DNA of 63,724 bases, the filler included, from Klebsormidium nitens (Eukaryota; Plantae; Klebsormidiophyceae): the NCBI GenBank assembly GCA_000708835.1. It is 8 parts of 8 records of this genome, joined end to end, with 100 filler letters (N's around TTAATTAATTAA, not from the genome) between each part and the next. Parts side by side here need not be neighbours in the genome. Positions count along the whole stretch, not along the records: positions 34,252 to 40,588 come from DF238364.1; 7 more parts are not named here. One strand, written 5' to 3'. Shown here piece by piece: positions 33,963 to 40,999 of this stretch. The notes below the pieces were generated by a model. That model was given only the letters and a program-made list of their open reading frames with translations, was not told where the DNA came from and ran no database searches. Made by a program: the position numbers and the translations under genes. Each line of letters opens with the position of its first letter. Position 1 is the first letter of the stretch.

Positions 33963-34270
33963 CTTTCACAATTTTTGGATACTGCCAAGATTTTTTTGAC
34001 CACCTCAAGGTCCCCGATTCCAGATAACATGAATGAGCACGTTCAAAATCGTTCGCACGAAATCGAGATGGGTAGCAGCTTTTAACGGTAAAAACGGTTA
34101 TGAGTGCGTGTAAAAGCCGCCTAAAAAGCGAGATGGCCACTCAATTTTCAGNNNNNNNNNNNNNNNNNNNNNNNNNNNNNNNNNNNNNNNNNNNNTTAAT
34201 TAATTAANNNNNNNNNNNNNNNNNNNNNNNNNNNNNNNNNNNNNNNNNNNNCTGTTCAGCGCCGCTTCAG

Positions 34271-37200
34271 TTAATATAGTGCATACTTCGATCTCTCAAA
34301 CAGCGTATCAAGAATCGTTGTGACCCTACTCATCAAGCGTCTAATGCTCGTGATATGCTGGAGACTAGCCGCCGATCGCTTTAAGCCCGAATTGATCCCT
34401 CCGCTGGCTGTTGTCACGGTATGATCGTGCTGCGAGTAGGAGTCGATGAACAGAGTCGGCGAGCAGGTGTGCGTCGCATAACGCTTGGCCGCTCCAGCGG
34501 GCGCGCAGCTGATCGGGCCAGAATGGAATCGATCGAAGAGGAAGAGCATGTATTTTGCCAGCGGTGGCACCCTGCACAAAAGAGAGTTGTAAAGATTGTT
34601 AGTAAAGGCCATGAACGGAAAACGTGGTAAAGCAAAGGGCGTTTTGGCCACCAAAGCTCAACAGAAGCTTGAAGACTCACGTTAATGCATCTCGAGTTAA
34701 TGCAGATGCACAAACTGTGGGTCAAACACACGGATTGCGCAACTTGTATCACTCACCGGTTGATAAGCCATTCCTGGGCGTTGCAGGCGGCGTCCTCCAC
34801 TACCGTCAGGCCGCGCAGGGTCTTGAAGGGGAAGCGTGTGATCAGGACCGTTCCCAAATCTGATACGCTCTCGCCGCCCTTAAGCCAGTGATAGCCGAGG
34901 GGCGCCCGATCCTGGCAGCATGCAATGAACATCCCTGCTCGGCTCTTGGACGACCGAGGATTTGGGGCCCCACAGTGCTGCGCGAGCCGCTCCTCGGAGC
35001 CCTTCTTTCCCCGCCCCGACGCGTCCTCCCAATCCGTGAATTGCGGCCGCCCATAGAGTAGCGGGTGGAAAGCGTAGATTGATACGGCCCCCATGCACGC
35101 TCTCTACAGACAGCCGAGGCCTCTCGTAGAAAGCCGTCAAGACCGTAGCACTGGGGCTCCCGCATCCCAAGCTCAAACAAGAGGGTGTTGGCGCCCCCCT
35201 TGAGCGTTGCGCCAAGTTGTTCCGTATAGACCATGCCAGGGTCTCTTGAGTTGCCCACTGACCTGAGCCTCTCACGCTCCAAGAACCACAGATGCTCCGT
35301 AGCATCGAGGAGCGCAGCAAGAGGGGAGCGACCACTGGAGGCACTGGGACGGTTGGCACTCGGTTCGAAACAGAGGAGGTTGGTTGCGTAGATGTCCCGG
35401 ACGAGCGGACGTAGTGCCGCTGGAAAGGCGTATTGCCTAGGACCCGTTTGCACTCCGACCGTTGGGTGCAGCCGAAGGATGGCGGCTAGCATTGGCCCAT
35501 CGTTGGTGAGATAAGCGAGCCCCCTCTCGTCAACTGGCCCCTCGAGCAACAGATGTCGAAGCAGCTTCAGCGTCACGATGTGCCCGAATACCCAGCTGTA
35601 GCGGGGTATCAGGAGAGCGTGCACGAGGGCCGCGTATGGCTGGAAATGGGTCGGGCACCAACCTGTGGGCGCTACCGGGCCCCCTTTCAAAACTCCATCC
35701 ATCCAGGGCCTCCGGGGCACAGCCTTGCAGACCGCACATGTCGTAGGGTCGGCGCAGCTCCCGGACTCTGTCGCAAGGTCGATCAGGGCCCTCACGTTTG
35801 CCGGCAACCCCTGACGCATGGCAACGAACTCCTCCGCCGAAAGAGGCGAGTTGGCCCCCTGACCCTGGCCCTTCCAAAAGTTACACCATCGGAAGGCCGC
35901 TGCTCGTACGGCCGGCCTCAGCTCCGACAGCCCGTTCCTAAACTTCGAAGGGCAGTCGATCCCCTCGAGAGGAACGTCCGAGGGCCGCATCCCACCGACG
36001 CCCAGAGGGGTGAAACCCCCTGCCACGCGAGGTGCGCCCGGGTCCGGCTCACATATGCTATACAGAGAGGCCTCGTTGCTGTCCCGCATAGCTCTGGAGT
36101 TGGGGGAAAATGTGCCGTCGAACGTGATGACCTTATCCCGGCTGAAGGCGTAGGTTGAAAGATTCAGGGGCGGCCCCTCGGTCCGCTCCGGTTGGAGTGG
36201 GCATCCGGCTCTCTCTGCCTCTGCCTCAGCAGCTCGAACTTCAGACGTGTATAGATAAGCGCAATCAGGACGTTTGCAGACGTGCTGGATCCGAGGCCGG
36301 GCTGCGAGATCGTTGAAGGCCTGCATCGCTGCGTCAAAGACGCGGTCGTCCAGCCTGGATGCGCTCGGGCCTTCGAGGCTTCTGGTCGCCATGTTGTTGG
36401 CGTCAAAGTTGAGCGAATGGGAAGCACCCAAGGCTGCCGCAAAGTGGTTGCGCAGCAGGAGGCCGTGCGAGATGAGCGTCGTCCCGGAGAAGTTGAAGAT
36501 GGCGTCCTCCTGCAAGGAAATAGAGAGATACATTCAATCATTCAAATCCTACGTTTGAAACCAACCAGTTGTTTTGATCGGCGTCTTAAAGGGACAACCA
36601 TGGCTGCAAATGAGAAGTTCGCCGAGCCGTATTGAGCGTCGTCGGTCAAAAGGGTGCCCTTTCTCTTCGAGACTTGGCAGCTTCCGCATCAACCGTGCAA
36701 AGACGCCTAAGCGTATATTGGAGGTGTGATGCACGAATTCTCGGTGCCTTTCAATCGAACACTTGGTCCCAAACCGCTGATGGAGATCCGGCCGTGGCAA
36801 GCTTGCTCCAAGTGCGGTCGTCTTACTGATTTGGTGTGGCCGTTGCCTCCCCACGAGGAGCTTGTAGTCTGCGATTATTGCATTCATACAGGGTACGAGT
36901 CGCTACTTGGCTGCTTGACCACTCTTGATGCGCGCAAGTTGTATCACGTACAAAACTTGTCCAACTTGCAATGGGTGCCGCATCCAGAAAAGAGGCTAAA
37001 GACCCGGTATTATCTGAAATCCGACGTGCATAAGCTTGCCATTCGGACATACGGCGGGCCAGAGTGCTTCAAAGCATTCCAAGGTGCTAAGGCTAAAGGG
37101 AAAAAGCAACGGCGTGCACAAAGTGCAATAAACACTGAGCAATCGGTAATCGGTCCAGGTGGTGAGAACTAGATCTTACCTGACCGTCGTAAGCCACCGA

Positions 37201-39061
37201 GCAGCACGCCGCCTCTCGTCCTGGTGCGATCGTACACACCCGCCGGTACGTCATCACCGGATAGCGCGCCCCAGCCGTATAGAGCGATCCACTCCTGCTC
37301 TCCAGTTGCCATGGCCGCCCGCAACCTGGTCAGAGCGGTTCAACGGGCCTCGGCGCACAGAAGTACTTTGCCCCATCCCGCTTCCGGATCCCCTCATCAC
37401 CCCATCGTTCGCAGAGGCTCGTGACCTGCTGCCCACCCCTGCTCATGACTGTGTCGATCTTCTTGTGGCTGTGCCCCATGTCCAAGGCTGCTGCAGGGAG
37501 GCACTCCCACTCCTCGAGCGTGCCTCCATGCACGCACGCAACCTTTAAGTCGGGCCTTCGACACATGGGGTCGTTGCAGACCCAGAGCTTCCATTGTCCA
37601 GACGCTCGAAGCGCTGACCTCTCCGCACGCTTGTCCGAGTTTGTTGCTCCCCTCTTGGTAGCCTTGTGAGCAGGCCCGCTCTGAACCCCATCTCCTCCCC
37701 CCGTTGCTGTAAGCACCCTTTTTACGTGCGGACACCGCTCCCGTTCTGAGCATCTGCTGCAGAAGGCGCTCATTCCAGCGAGCACGCAGACCGCCGGAGA
37801 GTCATCGGCTCCCTCTGAGGTCACAAAGACGCGCAGCTGCGGCCCCAGCCAGGCCTCCGCATTGAGGCCAGTCAGAGGCACTCCAAGCTGACCTCCCGAT
37901 CGAGTGGGAGCACTCGTCCGAGTCCGGTACCCGTCACCTCCCGTGCGAACCTCTTTCCGCCGTTGAACGAGCCGAAGAGGGGCTCGACCTCCTTCGAAAC
38001 CGACTGCCACCATCCGTCGAGAAAAGCGATTTGTCTGAGAAAACGGATGTCGTGCTCTCTGCACGCCCTCTGGCCGCACATGCAGGCGTAGTCACCAAGT
38101 GGTCCACCTGGACAAGCCTGGGGACGTTGACGGGCCTTCCGTCCCTCAACGAGATGTCGATTCAAGCCGGTAGTTGACGTCCAGTTGCGGCACGAGGAAA
38201 AGGCCGGGTGCGATGATCGTTGGAGGAACCGCGCTTCTTTTTAACTCCCCAAAGATCAAGGCTGAGCCGAGTTCCTTTGGAGTCGGGCCCGATTCGAGCG
38301 CCTTCTTTTTGGGGCGGTCCCGGTTTGTCGTTCGACTCTCTTTGCAGTACGGGCATGCGACCAGGTCCCGCCTCTGGACGAAGAACGGGTGCCCCCCCTC
38401 CGCTGCAGGCTGCCCCAGATGTGCGAGTCTTAGCTCTTCCGCGGCAGGGAAGGCCTCGTACTTCCTGAAGAGGTCCCCCCGGTCAATGACGGCCCCCGCG
38501 TGGAGGTCGAAACGAAAGGGCAGCCTCCCGCGTACATGGCGTCCAAGCAGCGGAGGCACAACAGGTGACCTCCCCCGCCGGGGCAGATGATCGCGTCGCC
38601 TCGGTTCCTCTTTCGATCCCAGACAAAAGGGTCCAGACCGCGGGAGTAGATGGGGACCTTCCCCTTGCAGCTGCCTCCTATGCACGTGGACCCAAAGCCC
38701 CGTTTGGTGAAGGCCTCCGATTGCCGTAGGCAGAATGCGTACCCATAGTCAAAGAAGAAGTCGACATTTGATCTTGCTGTGCCGCATACGACGGCTGACC
38801 CGGGCCCCGAACCCCTCCAGCGTTCGGCAACGGCGAGACAGCTACGGGAACGCTTCTCAGGTCCGAGAAGAGGACGTTAAGGCCGGGTAGGGGAGCGCAG
38901 GGCTCCGTCGGAACCTCCAATCGTGACAGCAGCAAGCGCCCGGACCTGATCGCCCGCGGCCAAAGTGCTGTGCAGGCGGGCGTTTGGCGCTGGTGCGGTC
39001 GAGGTGAGCAGCAGAGGTCGAGACACGCCGTTGACGAGCGCCATCCTGCACACGCGGGCAA
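34271..39061 (-). pseudogene. Near full-length KDZ/Zisupton-like transposase gene (SWIM-like fingers, CxC domain, KDZ core) with one 670-nt intron (36510-37179), several frameshifts and an in-frame TGA at 37330
   Basis: YACMCGQRACREH and FCSRCSERERCPH (SWIM-like). Splicing CAG|GTAAG (37180) to TTGCAG|GAG (36509) gives ...CGRPWQLESRSGSLYT...YRRVC...CCSVAYDGQ|EDAIFNFSG..., a CxC-type YDG-x2-(D/G)-x-IFN motif. C-terminal VEDAAC, LFDRFH, ASGGIN. The 5' part aligns frame by frame with 60439-61629. Confidence 0.75.
36729..37172 (+). CDS. XPA/Rad14-like C4 zinc finger + XPA C-terminal-like domain, nested antisense in the KDZ transposase intron
   Basis: CSKCGRLTDLVWP...VVCDYC, LTTLDARKLYHV, RYYLKSDVHKLAIRTYGGPE resemble the XPA DNA-binding domain pattern. 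The uninterrupted ORF lies wholly within intron 36510-37179. Confidence 0.65.
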   Translation: MHEFSVPFNRTLGPKPLMEIRPWQACSKCGRLTDLVWPLPPHEELVVCDYCIHTGYESLLGCLTTLDARKLYHVQNLSNLQWVPHPEKRLKTRYYLKSDVHKLAIRTYGGPECFKAFQGAKAKGKKQRRAQSAINTEQSVIGPGGEN

Positions 39062-39172
39062 TTGAGCTACGAATTGAGCTTATTGCATCTCTCTAAGTAT
39101 GTCGAGGGTCCTCGAGCTTGGTGGGCCGGCCACCCAGGTGAGTTTCTGAGAGATTTTGTATTTGATGACGCG

Positions 39173-39818
39173 TGTACCAAGTTTTGAGAATCTCAGGCTC
39201 CTTTAGGAAAGAACACGCCTGACCTTGGTACTCCTCTGAAATTGAAACTGACGATTGGCCCGACCATACCACTAGAAACTGAACCTTGAACCGACCATAC
39301 CACTGATTATCTGAGTTGAATATTGCAATTGATGGCACGTGTACCAAGATTTGAGAATCTCTACTTTAAGAAAGAATACGATGTACCTTTGGTACATCTG
39401 AGAACCTGAAGCCCAACCATACCCCTGGTTATGTCAGTATGCACAGACATTTATTGTGATTGATGGCGGGTGTACCAAGATTTGCGACGTTTTACTTTAA
39501 GAAAGAACAAGCCTGACCTTGATACTCCTCTGAAATTGAAACTGACGATTGGCCCGACCATACCACTAGAAACTGAATCTTGAACCGACCATACCACTGA
39601 TTATCTGAGGAATATTGCAATTGATGGCACGTGTACCAAGATTTGAGAATCTCTACTTTAAGAAAGAATACGCATACCTTTGGTAAATCTGAGAATCTGA
39701 AGCCCAACCATACCCCTGGTTATGTCAGTATGCACAAAAATTTATTGTGATTGATGGCGGGTGTACCAAGATTTGGGACGTTTTACTTAAAGAAAGAACA
39801 AGCCTAACTTCTTGGTAC
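39173..39818. repeat. Array of five ~55-bp imperfect palindromes TGTACCAAG...(C/T)TTGGTAC in a higher-order ~291-bp tandem repeat; an outlier unit at 40437-40490
   Basis: Units start at 39173, 39340, 39471, 39632 and 39762 (spacing 167, 131, 161, 130). Located 5' of the minus-strand KDZ gene. Confidence 0.85.
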
Positions 39819-40999
39819 GACACCTTATCCTGGTCAAATTGCCTTTTCTAGTGTAGTTGAAACAGTCGTGCAAGTTGTCTGCCCACCATGCCGTTGAATT
39901 CTCGAGTCTGACAGTATCTTGTAGCTGGTGGCACCTGGCATGCCACTGGCTTTCCGCCACAGCTTGTAAGATTAGCACTGTCACTGCCATACTCACGTTG
40001 AGAGGGCGGTCACTGCTAAGGCCAGCGGTCCAGCCCAGCAGCATTGAGCCTCCCCTTTCATTCTGGGTACATGTTGAATGAATCTGCAGACACGGGAATC
40101 AGAGTGAGTTTACAACCATAGCTTGTTTCTGATGTTGCTACCTAGAATCCACCATACATACGAATCTCGGAGACATGCAGCTTTCATATGAGTCTGCAGG
40201 CCATCATTCCGGTGAGTTCCCCAGCTGCATAGTAGTTCGTACAGTACTGTATCAAGAATTACTATTATTGAAGAGAAACAGACGAACTCGTGGTACTGAC
40301 ACTAGATTCAACGCAAACTCACTTTCAGTGCTCCATCTTGTGCCGGTGGTTGCAAGCGCCACTGAAGCGTGGTCTCTCTTCATGTTTAGATTTGCACATG
40401 CAACATAATTGCTTCAGAAGATGTAGTTGATATCGGTGTACCAAGAAGTAGGTACTACTACTCTAAAGAGGATTAGGCAGTTGTTGGTACTTCAGTGACA
40501 TGTTTTCGGACGGCCATCTCACTGGTTTTCTTACCAGGGCCCTTGTAGGTGATGGGCTGTATGTGACGATTCGAGTCTATGAATCTTCNNNNNNNNNNNN
40601 NNNNNNNNNNNNNNNNNNNNNNNNNNNNNNNNTTAATTAATTAANNNNNNNNNNNNNNNNNNNNNNNNNNNNNNNNNNNNNNNNNNNNTTACAAGTTACA
40701 ATCTTGTCGCATCCATTTCAGTGATCCACATTCAAGCCCAAGGCGGGCGGATCAGTGGTAGCGCCTGCATGCTCGTTGCTCGTTGCTCATGAATGCACGA
40801 ACACGAAGAGCTTCTAGGGGCAGAGAACTCTCGTTGCCTGAAGGGCAGAATTGAGCTTCTAGCATTCTGCTTTGCGGACTGTCCCGCTATTGCAGCTCAA
40901 ATCTTGCGCACGTTGTAGTGGCACTGACGGAGCGGCATTGATTGAAGCAGAGAGTCAAGCAGATTGATTCTGTCGCTACCACCACCGCATATTCAAAAG

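Follow-up and report, generated by a model that had tools for sequence, protein, structure and literature searches.

An antisense XPA-like gene within the intron of a probable KDZ-type transposase gene in a multi-copy element of Klebsormidium nitens

What is an open antisense reading frame doing inside the intron of a gene that looks like a transposase? The question is raised by a locus in the alga Klebsormidium nitens. The window, by which we mean the whole stretch of DNA (63,724 nucleotides), includes a piece of 6337 bases (34252-40588), and this piece is our subject. Its minus-strand gene was deposited as the hypothetical protein KFL_014150010, partial (P0002; 100% identity). An earlier note on this DNA had described that gene as a KDZ-like (Kyakuja-Dileera-Zisupton) transposase whose intron hides, on the opposite strand, a gene for a relative of the repair protein XPA. 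We will call the minus-strand gene the host gene and the plus-strand open reading frame (ORF) the nested ORF. The answer that we favor, and that we hold to be reasonably probable, is that both are parts of a multi-copy element: the host gene encodes a probable KDZ transposase, and the antisense gene nested in its intron is an accessory gene that encodes an XPA-type DNA-binding domain.

First, is there an intron? The host gene's intron is at 36510..37179 on the minus strand (670 nt, phase 0, GT..AG). On that strand, the donor GTAAG comes after the exon end ...CCSVAYDGQ (37180), and the acceptor TTGCAG comes before EDAIFNFSG (36509). The GC content is ~0.50 within the intron versus 0.60-0.65 in the flanking exons. 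We compared 10 loci that cover the junction: the window copy, L001-L006, L008/L009, and L014. Besides the window copy, these are 5 copies from K. nitens and 4 metagenome contigs, and they were gathered by exact-protein look-ups. In 10/10 of these loci, donor GT and acceptor AG interrupt the gene at one and the same codon boundary (phase 0), and the intron is 619-1249 nt long across copies. Both the sequence and the conserved splice sites thus agree with the canonical phase-0 intron (GTAAG...TTGCAG) that the earlier note had placed here.

Public sequencing runs aligned to the stretch gave a single joint, and it is the expected one. Contigs in two runs, X1 and X3 (which share one organism label and are only guessed to be RNA), skip exactly 670 nt (36508/9->37179/80). 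The ends of the skipped stretch are CT..AC on the plus strand, which is GT..AG on the minus strand, and in the flanks the contigs are 97.7-98.5% identical to the window. Such a precise excision of a canonical intron is what one would expect from spliced mRNA, and the junction that had been predicted (37180->36509) is the one that these contigs contain. The NCBI model KFL_014150010 joins ...CAPRP straight to EDAIFNFSG, and so drops the last 50 codons of the upstream exon. These codons (37180..37329, minus strand) encode a cysteine cluster that ends in ...CCSVAYDGQ. The model takes another donor (window 37333/36509) because this avoids an in-frame stop of the upstream exon at 37330..37332 (minus strand), where the paralogues read Ser. 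Unlike the model, the X1 and X3 contigs use the donor at 37180.

Second, is the nested ORF a gene? What is open in the window is at 36729..37172 on the plus strand (147 codons and a stop), and it holds a zinc finger and an XPA-C-like domain. It occupies 66% of the intron, and its stop codon (37170-37172) is 7 nt off the host donor; our ORF list agrees here with the earlier description of an uninterrupted antisense ORF that fills about two-thirds of the intron. A homologous antisense ORF is present inside the same phase-0 intron in 10/10 of the junction-covering loci, and the flanking exon ends, (Y/F)DG(Q/R) upstream and E(D/N)GIFN downstream, are common to all of them. The only close database relative of the nested ORF, P0001 (66% identity), is on a 124-kb contig from a soil metagenome that is colinear with the window over the host exon, the intron, the ORF, and the next exon, at 76% DNA identity. 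The loci are not all so similar: the L008/L009 lineage has just ~45-66% amino acid identity to the other loci in the host protein. In the nested ORF, the Nei-Gojobori ratio of nonsynonymous to synonymous substitution rates (dN/dS) is 0.17-0.34, and in the host exons on either side it is 0.09-0.11; the remaining five reading frames across the nested ORF hold 2-19 stops. The earlier note had left it to other copies, and to a comparison of dN/dS between the nested and host genes, to say whether the arrangement is more than a curiosity of one copy, and both speak for it. Judging from the 10/10 loci, the conserved sites, the dN/dS, and the stops in the other frames, the nested ORF evolves under purifying selection, is probably a gene, and is no one-off insertion.

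We also considered that there might be no intron, but rather two minus-strand genes around a small plus-strand gene, or that the frame might be open by chance or be a one-off insertion. An ORF as long as this one arose in 240/5000 Markov shuffles, so its length alone is only marginally unusual, and the case for a gene has to rest on conservation and homology. The different donor in the NCBI model would also fit with the absence of this intron. However, contigs from two runs show exact GT..AG removal, the phase-0 sites are in all copies, a domain match that we describe below (CxC4) runs across the joined exons, and the nested homologue is in 10/10 loci with dN/dS <1. With the spliced contigs, the conserved sites, the dN/dS, and the 10/10 loci in hand, we rejected all of these alternatives, and we find this family of explanations hardly credible.

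The rates are not uniform along the locus in one pair of K. nitens copies. Between L002 (KFL_008920030) and L005 (KFL_002740165), dS is 0.19 in the nested gene, 0.33 in the upstream exon, and 1.28 in the downstream host exon. This discordance suggests that element lineages have recombined, or undergone gene conversion, near the intron acceptor.

Third, what does the gene encode? XPA is the single-copy scaffold of nucleotide excision repair. Searches with the window ORF as a single sequence (Pfam, phmmer against PDB, and the Atlas embedding) gave no XPA signal. Similarly, the Pfam model for XPA_C (PF05181) did not match the window ORF or the L002, L006, P0025, or P0026 proteins, and the best family member for this model, P0039, reached 18.8 bits, which is under the 25-bit cut-off. 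Profiles were more informative. We searched a family profile of seven members (alignment A2) exhaustively against 1.84 billion representative proteins. The search returned 24 proteins, and these include P0041, P0044, and P0045 (E 1e-6, 2.6e-4, and 9.2e-4), which are Pfam XPA_C proteins (64-82 bits); one of the three is labeled by its source as "DNA-repair protein complementing XP-A cells." (P0040, a repeat protein of 2033 amino acids that matched the nested profile, resembles the repeat proteins of bacterial surfaces, and we set it aside as spurious.) When the family was aligned to the three XPA_C proteins with hhalign, the probability was 96.7% (E 3.6e-10), and the 124 aligned columns begin at the zinc finger and run to the basic helix. 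Even the window ORF alone aligned to true XPA proteins at 94% (E 1.4e-7). Against all PDB sequences, the family profile ranked human XPA and yeast Rad14 first (E 0.003-0.03).

The predicted structure leads to the same place. In an AlphaFold (AF2) model of the L006 protein, the core has a predicted local distance difference test (pLDDT) score of 80-89, and each of the 15 best Foldseek matches of this model in PDB is either XPA or Rad14 (probability up to 1.0). VIA-align of the nested model against XPA/Rad14 gave Z 5-6. The top matches by shape in Atlas are XPA_C clusters, followed by SLC30A9, whose XPA-like domain is also in the PDB lists. Because independent methods agree, we consider the XPA assignment to be firm: by sequence profile and by modeled fold, the nested ORF is a true distant homologue of the XPA/Rad14 DNA-binding domain, at ~16-25% identity to XPA. 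The C4 finger and XPA-C-like domain that the earlier note had seen in the ORF are therefore visible at the level of both profile and fold. When set against XPA and Rad14, the family profile, hhalign, and Foldseek all favor the relationship, while the Pfam XPA_C model does not detect it in the ORF itself.

The homology has two parts. The zinc finger (36804..36881, plus strand; ORF residues 26-51) reads C26-x2-C29-x18-C48-x2-C51. Its four cysteines are invariant in the 7 family members of alignment A2, in which 25 columns are invariant in all, and in the hhalign and HMMER-PDB alignments it aligns with the finger of XPA, which reads C-x2-C-x17-C-x2-C. Next comes an XPA_C-like alpha/beta core with a basic helix (36903..37115, plus strand; residues ~59-129), as delimited by invariant columns, the XPA alignments, and AF2. 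The pattern of the nested core, CLTT..AR..Y...L..L.W..P....RYY..DV..A, aligns to LTKTEA...NP...LY...V...A..WG of XPA. In other words, the XPA/Rad14 DNA-binding domain (XPA_N PF01286 and XPA_C PF05181) and the nested protein both have a C4 finger of the same spacing class and a core of the form LT(K/T)TEA...Y.L...L...P....(L/Y)Y...V...A..(W/Y)G, which is followed by a basic helix. The alignments to XPA span only the finger to the basic helix; over its ~55 N-terminal residues, the nested protein matches nothing in XPA, and its model is poor there. Unlike in XPA, this N-terminus is unrelated to the part that binds ERCC1 and RPA32, and the C-terminal tail differs as well. Also, the nested gene is multi-copy and is carried by an element, in contrast to the single-copy repair gene.

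The N-terminus does offer one weak lead. The Pfam F-box model had no match on the nested proteins. A relative, P0046, is F-box-like at 23.2 bits versus a 24.3-bit cut-off, and the stretch in question is partly aligned to nested residues 23-35; overall, P0046 and the nested family align over 126 columns at 94.7%. Atlas neighbors with an F-box score 0.88, and the pLDDT of the nested N-terminus is <50. So the short, helical N-terminus of the nested protein is possibly F-box-like. The contig that carries P0046 (L013:3829-4767) is compact and eukaryotic, with RING-finger and TspO genes on either side of P0046, and a longer contig of P0046 also has MUS81/EME1 and aquaporin genes nearby. These cellular surroundings suggest that the element's XPA-like gene may have been captured from a cellular F-box-like/XPA-like gene of the P0046 type.

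If the gene was captured, it could be a mere passenger: a cellular gene that has no role in the element and that is open because of unrelated selection or short-lived inertia. P0046, with its F-box-like N-terminus and XPA-like domain, is the kind of cellular-looking relative that this explanation would need, and many of the nested copies are broken. But the gene keeps the same position, and a dN/dS of 0.17-0.34, even between element lineages that have diverged to saturation at synonymous sites, and over such a distance a useless gene would be lost or scrambled. Furthermore, the nested gene is intact where the host gene is intact: in L014, both the host model (1147 amino acids) and the nested ORF (229 amino acids) are whole. 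The other intact nested proteins are from L006 (244 amino acids) and L002 (307 amino acids). We consider it quite unlikely that the gene is a passenger, and we continue with an accessory gene of the element as our preferred reading.

Fourth, is the host gene a transposase? The host protein family is multi-copy, with at least 10 gene models in K. nitens and many relatives in JGI, ENA, and Logan, and all of its members lack a precomputed Pfam domain. Pfam searches at E 10 on 15 members of the family gave nothing relevant, and a word-indexed protein search with the host alignment A4 returned close family members only and no KDZ-annotated relative. We did find matches to CxC4 (PF18717), a domain that is described as "associated with KDZ transposases," in P0018, P0006, and P0048 (E 0.0019, 0.0057, and 0.044). 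These matches are at 14-18.5 bits, which is below the 26.9-bit cut-off, and they are at the same position in the three paralogues, where they span the joined exons. Since the match crosses the exon junction, the joined exons appear to make up a single domain. Of the 30 clusters that are nearest to the host in the Atlas embedding, 15 have the KDZ domain PF18758, with a top score of 0.95 and 197/256 shared features. The host also has the motifs FDGTF, (E)DAACN, and DRFH...H.C, which may resemble those of KDZ transposases. On the basis of these sequence comparisons, the host is probably KDZ-like. We take it for a probable DDE transposase of the KDZ type, and the conserved intron interrupts its gene within the part that encodes an N-terminal cysteine cluster. 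Two full-length paralogues, P0047 (KFL_006400060) and P0048 (KFL_009560030), are labeled "HMG domain-containing protein" in UniRef. We did not reproduce this label: a domain search of the two found nothing significant, and the best match was CxC4 at E 0.044 in P0048, with none for P0047.

The copy in the window is no longer functional. By comparison with P0001/L001 and other copies, the nested gene has a decayed 5' part at 36600..36728 (plus strand). Its ancestral ATG, which was identified by comparison with homologues, is at 36600, or 43 codons upstream of the open remnant. Relative to L001, there are 2 additional nucleotides at 36624-36625 and 1 at 36695, and there is a TAA at 36708-36710 where other copies read CAA. 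The earlier note had taken the nested ORF to be clean, which is not so, as its first ~43 codons hold these two frameshifts and the TAA. That note was right that the host has frameshifts and a stop. The host exon downstream of the intron (34842..36509, minus strand) starts with EDAIFNFSG, is open for 555 codons, and is part of KFL_014150010 (P0002), but the true C-terminal part of the host runs to ~34274 in other frames, so it is frameshifted in the window copy. On the other side of the intron, past the in-frame stop (37330-37332), the host's N-terminal half (37333..39061, minus strand) is decayed, with several frameshifts and stops in three-frame translations. Host coding sequence between 39060 and 37180 is spread over three or more frames, and when we compared the intact paralogue P0048 to this half with tblastn, several frames were needed and stops were crossed. 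As read from these defects, both genes in the window copy are pseudogenes, and this is a dead copy of a multi-copy mobile element.

Several findings weigh against our reading. The fold match is moderate: Foldseek E is 3e-3 or weaker, the template modeling (TM) score is <0.5, and Z is <8. The regions with which XPA binds its partners (ERCC1, RPA32, and TFIIH) are absent from the nested protein, so it is not an XPA for nucleotide excision repair. Most of the nested copies are damaged or truncated (the window copy, L001, L003, L004, L005, and L008/9): there is a nonsense codon in L005 and, together with a frameshift, in L008/9, the start is gone in L004, and the genes in L001 and L003 are cut short. 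The nested gene is covered only by unstranded soil RNA-Seq contigs, at 36858-37008 and 37045-37195. As for the spliced contigs, X1 and X3 are RNA only by a guess, and the contigs may derive from a near-identical paralogue or strain. The KDZ domain PF18758 had no match by HMMER, even at E 10, in at least 20 members of the host family, and an AF2 model of the host's catalytic half (655 amino acids, from 15 rows) has a mean pLDDT of 39, which is too poor for fold comparison. The earlier proposal of a KDZ/Zisupton-like transposase that is split at its CxC motif thus has the sub-threshold CxC4 matches and the embedding in its favor, while PF18758 never matches. Finally, neither terminal inverted repeats nor target-site duplications are defined, and the piece is 6.3 kb.

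If our reading is nevertheless correct, what would the nested protein do? An intact nested gene encodes a protein of 230-310 amino acids, with a short helical N-terminus, the C4 finger, and the alpha/beta core with its basic helix. By analogy to XPA, this protein would be an element-encoded accessory factor for distorted DNA or for junctions between single-stranded and double-stranded DNA. Its targets might be the ends, hairpins, or gaps that result from excision and integration, or they might be replication intermediates of the neighboring Prim-Pol/D5-type helicase, which we discuss below. It would act in trans, and it might recruit host factors. From its sequence, we infer that the nested protein could bind branched or damaged DNA; roles in excision repair, in the choice of target, or in regulation are all conceivable.

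The layout has consequences of its own. In the window, the ATG of the nested gene is ~90 nt from the host acceptor. The two ends of the nested ORF lie 7-90 nt from the splice sites, or overlap a host exon in some copies, and in L002 and L005 the ORF reaches ~18 nt into the host exon. Since the transcripts must overlap host exons, the two transcription units would overlap in antisense, and their expression is probably coupled. This raises the possibility that the nested unit is mainly regulatory, so that antisense transcription damps or times the transposase, through interference or double-stranded RNA, and the protein is secondary. The short distances (a stop 7 nt from the donor in the window, an ATG ~90 nt from the acceptor, and ~18 nt of host-exon overlap in L002/L005) would suit such a device, as would a soil RNA-Seq contig that runs unspliced across the host donor. 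On the other hand, the purifying selection acts on amino acids, and the finger and 25 invariant residues are conserved, so the protein itself matters. We think it very unlikely that regulation by antisense transcription is the main function, and our reading remains that the gene is kept for its protein.

The host gene does not stand alone. A gene for a primase-helicase (Prim-Pol/D5_N/DUF5906) follows it in every locus that is long enough to show this, and beyond the primase-helicase is a Herpes_ori_bp (UL9-like) helicase with DUF8368. This replication-gene neighborhood is at L001:5996-7333, L002:4643-8330, L004:8241-10127 and 16820-, L005:13914-22581, L006:10871-12764, L007:4559-14265, L008:1167-3956, and L014:7588-9698. 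The gene content suggests a large replicative or virus-like element in Klebsormidium, which is probably larger than a simple cut-and-paste transposon, and the role of the XPA-like protein may lie in replication no less than in transposition. So the idea of a KDZ transposon with a passenger in its intron, with which the earlier note had ended, needs some adjustment: the intron and its nested gene are conserved, but KDZ is only suggested, and replication genes adjoin.

Taken further, this line of thought leads to an explanation in which a big virus-like or self-replicating element encodes both the large protein and the XPA-like one, and the XPA-like protein serves the Prim-Pol/D5 and UL9-like replication module. 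It would then handle junctions at origins or primers, rather than in cut-and-paste transposition, and its placement in the intron would be a matter of gene packing. The primase-helicase (Prim-Pol/D5_N/DUF5906) and Herpes_ori_bp/DUF8368 genes do keep their position beside the host gene, and K. flaccidum was reported to have inserts that resemble nucleocytoplasmic large DNA viruses (PMC5294986). Also, a distant member of the nested family, P0042 (226 amino acids), stands alone on the plus strand in L011:8001-8681 and L012:2775-3455. There it is ~1 kb upstream of sequence with homology to the primase module, and outside of any KDZ-like intron. Yet in 10/10 of the loci with a KDZ-like junction, the gene sits in the intron and not beside the primase, and among the genes in the flanks that we fetched, we saw none for a capsid or for packaging. 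We consider a replication factor of this kind to be somewhat unlikely, but it is a serious possibility. We still prefer an accessory gene of a probable KDZ transposon, with the replication genes as its neighbors.

How does this compare to known systems? PIF/Harbinger elements have a separate Myb-like DNA-binding protein, and Helitrons have RPA-like genes. As in our element, the second protein of these elements is built on a DNA-binding module, which in the case of Helitrons was borrowed from the host's repair and replication toolkit. To our knowledge, the accessory genes of Harbinger and Helitron are beside the transposase, not antisense in an intron, and none are XPA-like. Like KDZ transposons, the host gene is large and multi-copy, and a cysteine cluster with a sub-threshold CxC4 match precedes its long catalytic-type region. 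Green algae are known to have KDZ families (PMC8226300), and TET/JBP genes are known as accessory genes of fungal KDZ elements and of other transposons (PMC12730594, which also treats Harbinger). The element differs from the fungal KDZ elements with TET/JBP in that its accessory gene is XPA-like, is antisense inside the transposase intron, and has replication-type genes adjacent. A transposase that is linked to viral-type replication genes is also found in Teratorn, which is a fusion of piggyBac and a herpesvirus (PMC5601938), and in other giant transposons (PMC6431247). In contrast to Teratorn, the type of transposase differs, and the Klebsormidium flanks showed no capsid or packaging genes. 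Finally, the DNA-binding-like domain of SLC30A9 (PDB 2enk) and P0046 are other cases of the XPA fold outside of nucleotide excision repair, but these are in cellular genes that look single-copy, and they are not nested in a transposase.

Our full-text search of the available papers found none that joins Kyakuja with XPA, "XPA-like" with transposon, or Klebsormidium with Zisupton, and we found none of the nested proteins in NCBI or UniRef. The nested XPA-like gene would be a transposon accessory gene of a new type, and its nested position is unusual and conserved. In eukaryotic DNA transposons, accessory functions include the Myb-like protein of Harbinger, the RPA-like protein of Helitron, and the TET/JBP proteins of fungal KDZ elements; a mobile element that maintains an XPA-type DNA-binding module would add a new one, and such a module hints at the DNA structures that are present in the element's intermediates. 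The conserved antisense-in-intron layout also provides a natural system for studying how the splicing of one gene is coupled to the expression of another. There is a gain in annotation as well, since K. nitens is a key streptophyte model and the nested family is unannotated in it. The linkage to the primase-helicase and UL9-like genes hints at a larger, undescribed type of element in early-diverging streptophytes. One could go beyond this and imagine an undescribed class of large algal elements that combine a KDZ-type transposase, Prim-Pol/D5, a UL9-like helicase, and an XPA-derived, possibly F-box-linked sensor of junctions or lesions. In such elements, the sensor gene would lie antisense in the intron of the transposase's cysteine cluster, so that splicing of the transposase and expression of the sensor would depend on each other, and the sensor would recognize the intermediates of excision, integration, or replication and recruit or remove host factors there. 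We regard this fuller picture as unlikely, and as a speculation that is worth having in mind.

Other scans of this material added little. Profile scans of metagenome contigs with the nested alignment A1 and the host-exon alignment A6 found no relatives, and an Rfam scan of the piece had no match. When copies were compared past the host start codon (beyond 39060), there was no homology, and the ends of the element were not reached. This region does contain a tandem repeat (window 39201-39805), for which the other copies that we fetched show no homologous sequence. The repeat is a short way upstream of the host start, in AT-richer sequence (GC ~0.40), and consists of 2.1 copies of a 291-bp unit, with a 95% match between copies and an internal duplicated motif of 31 bp.

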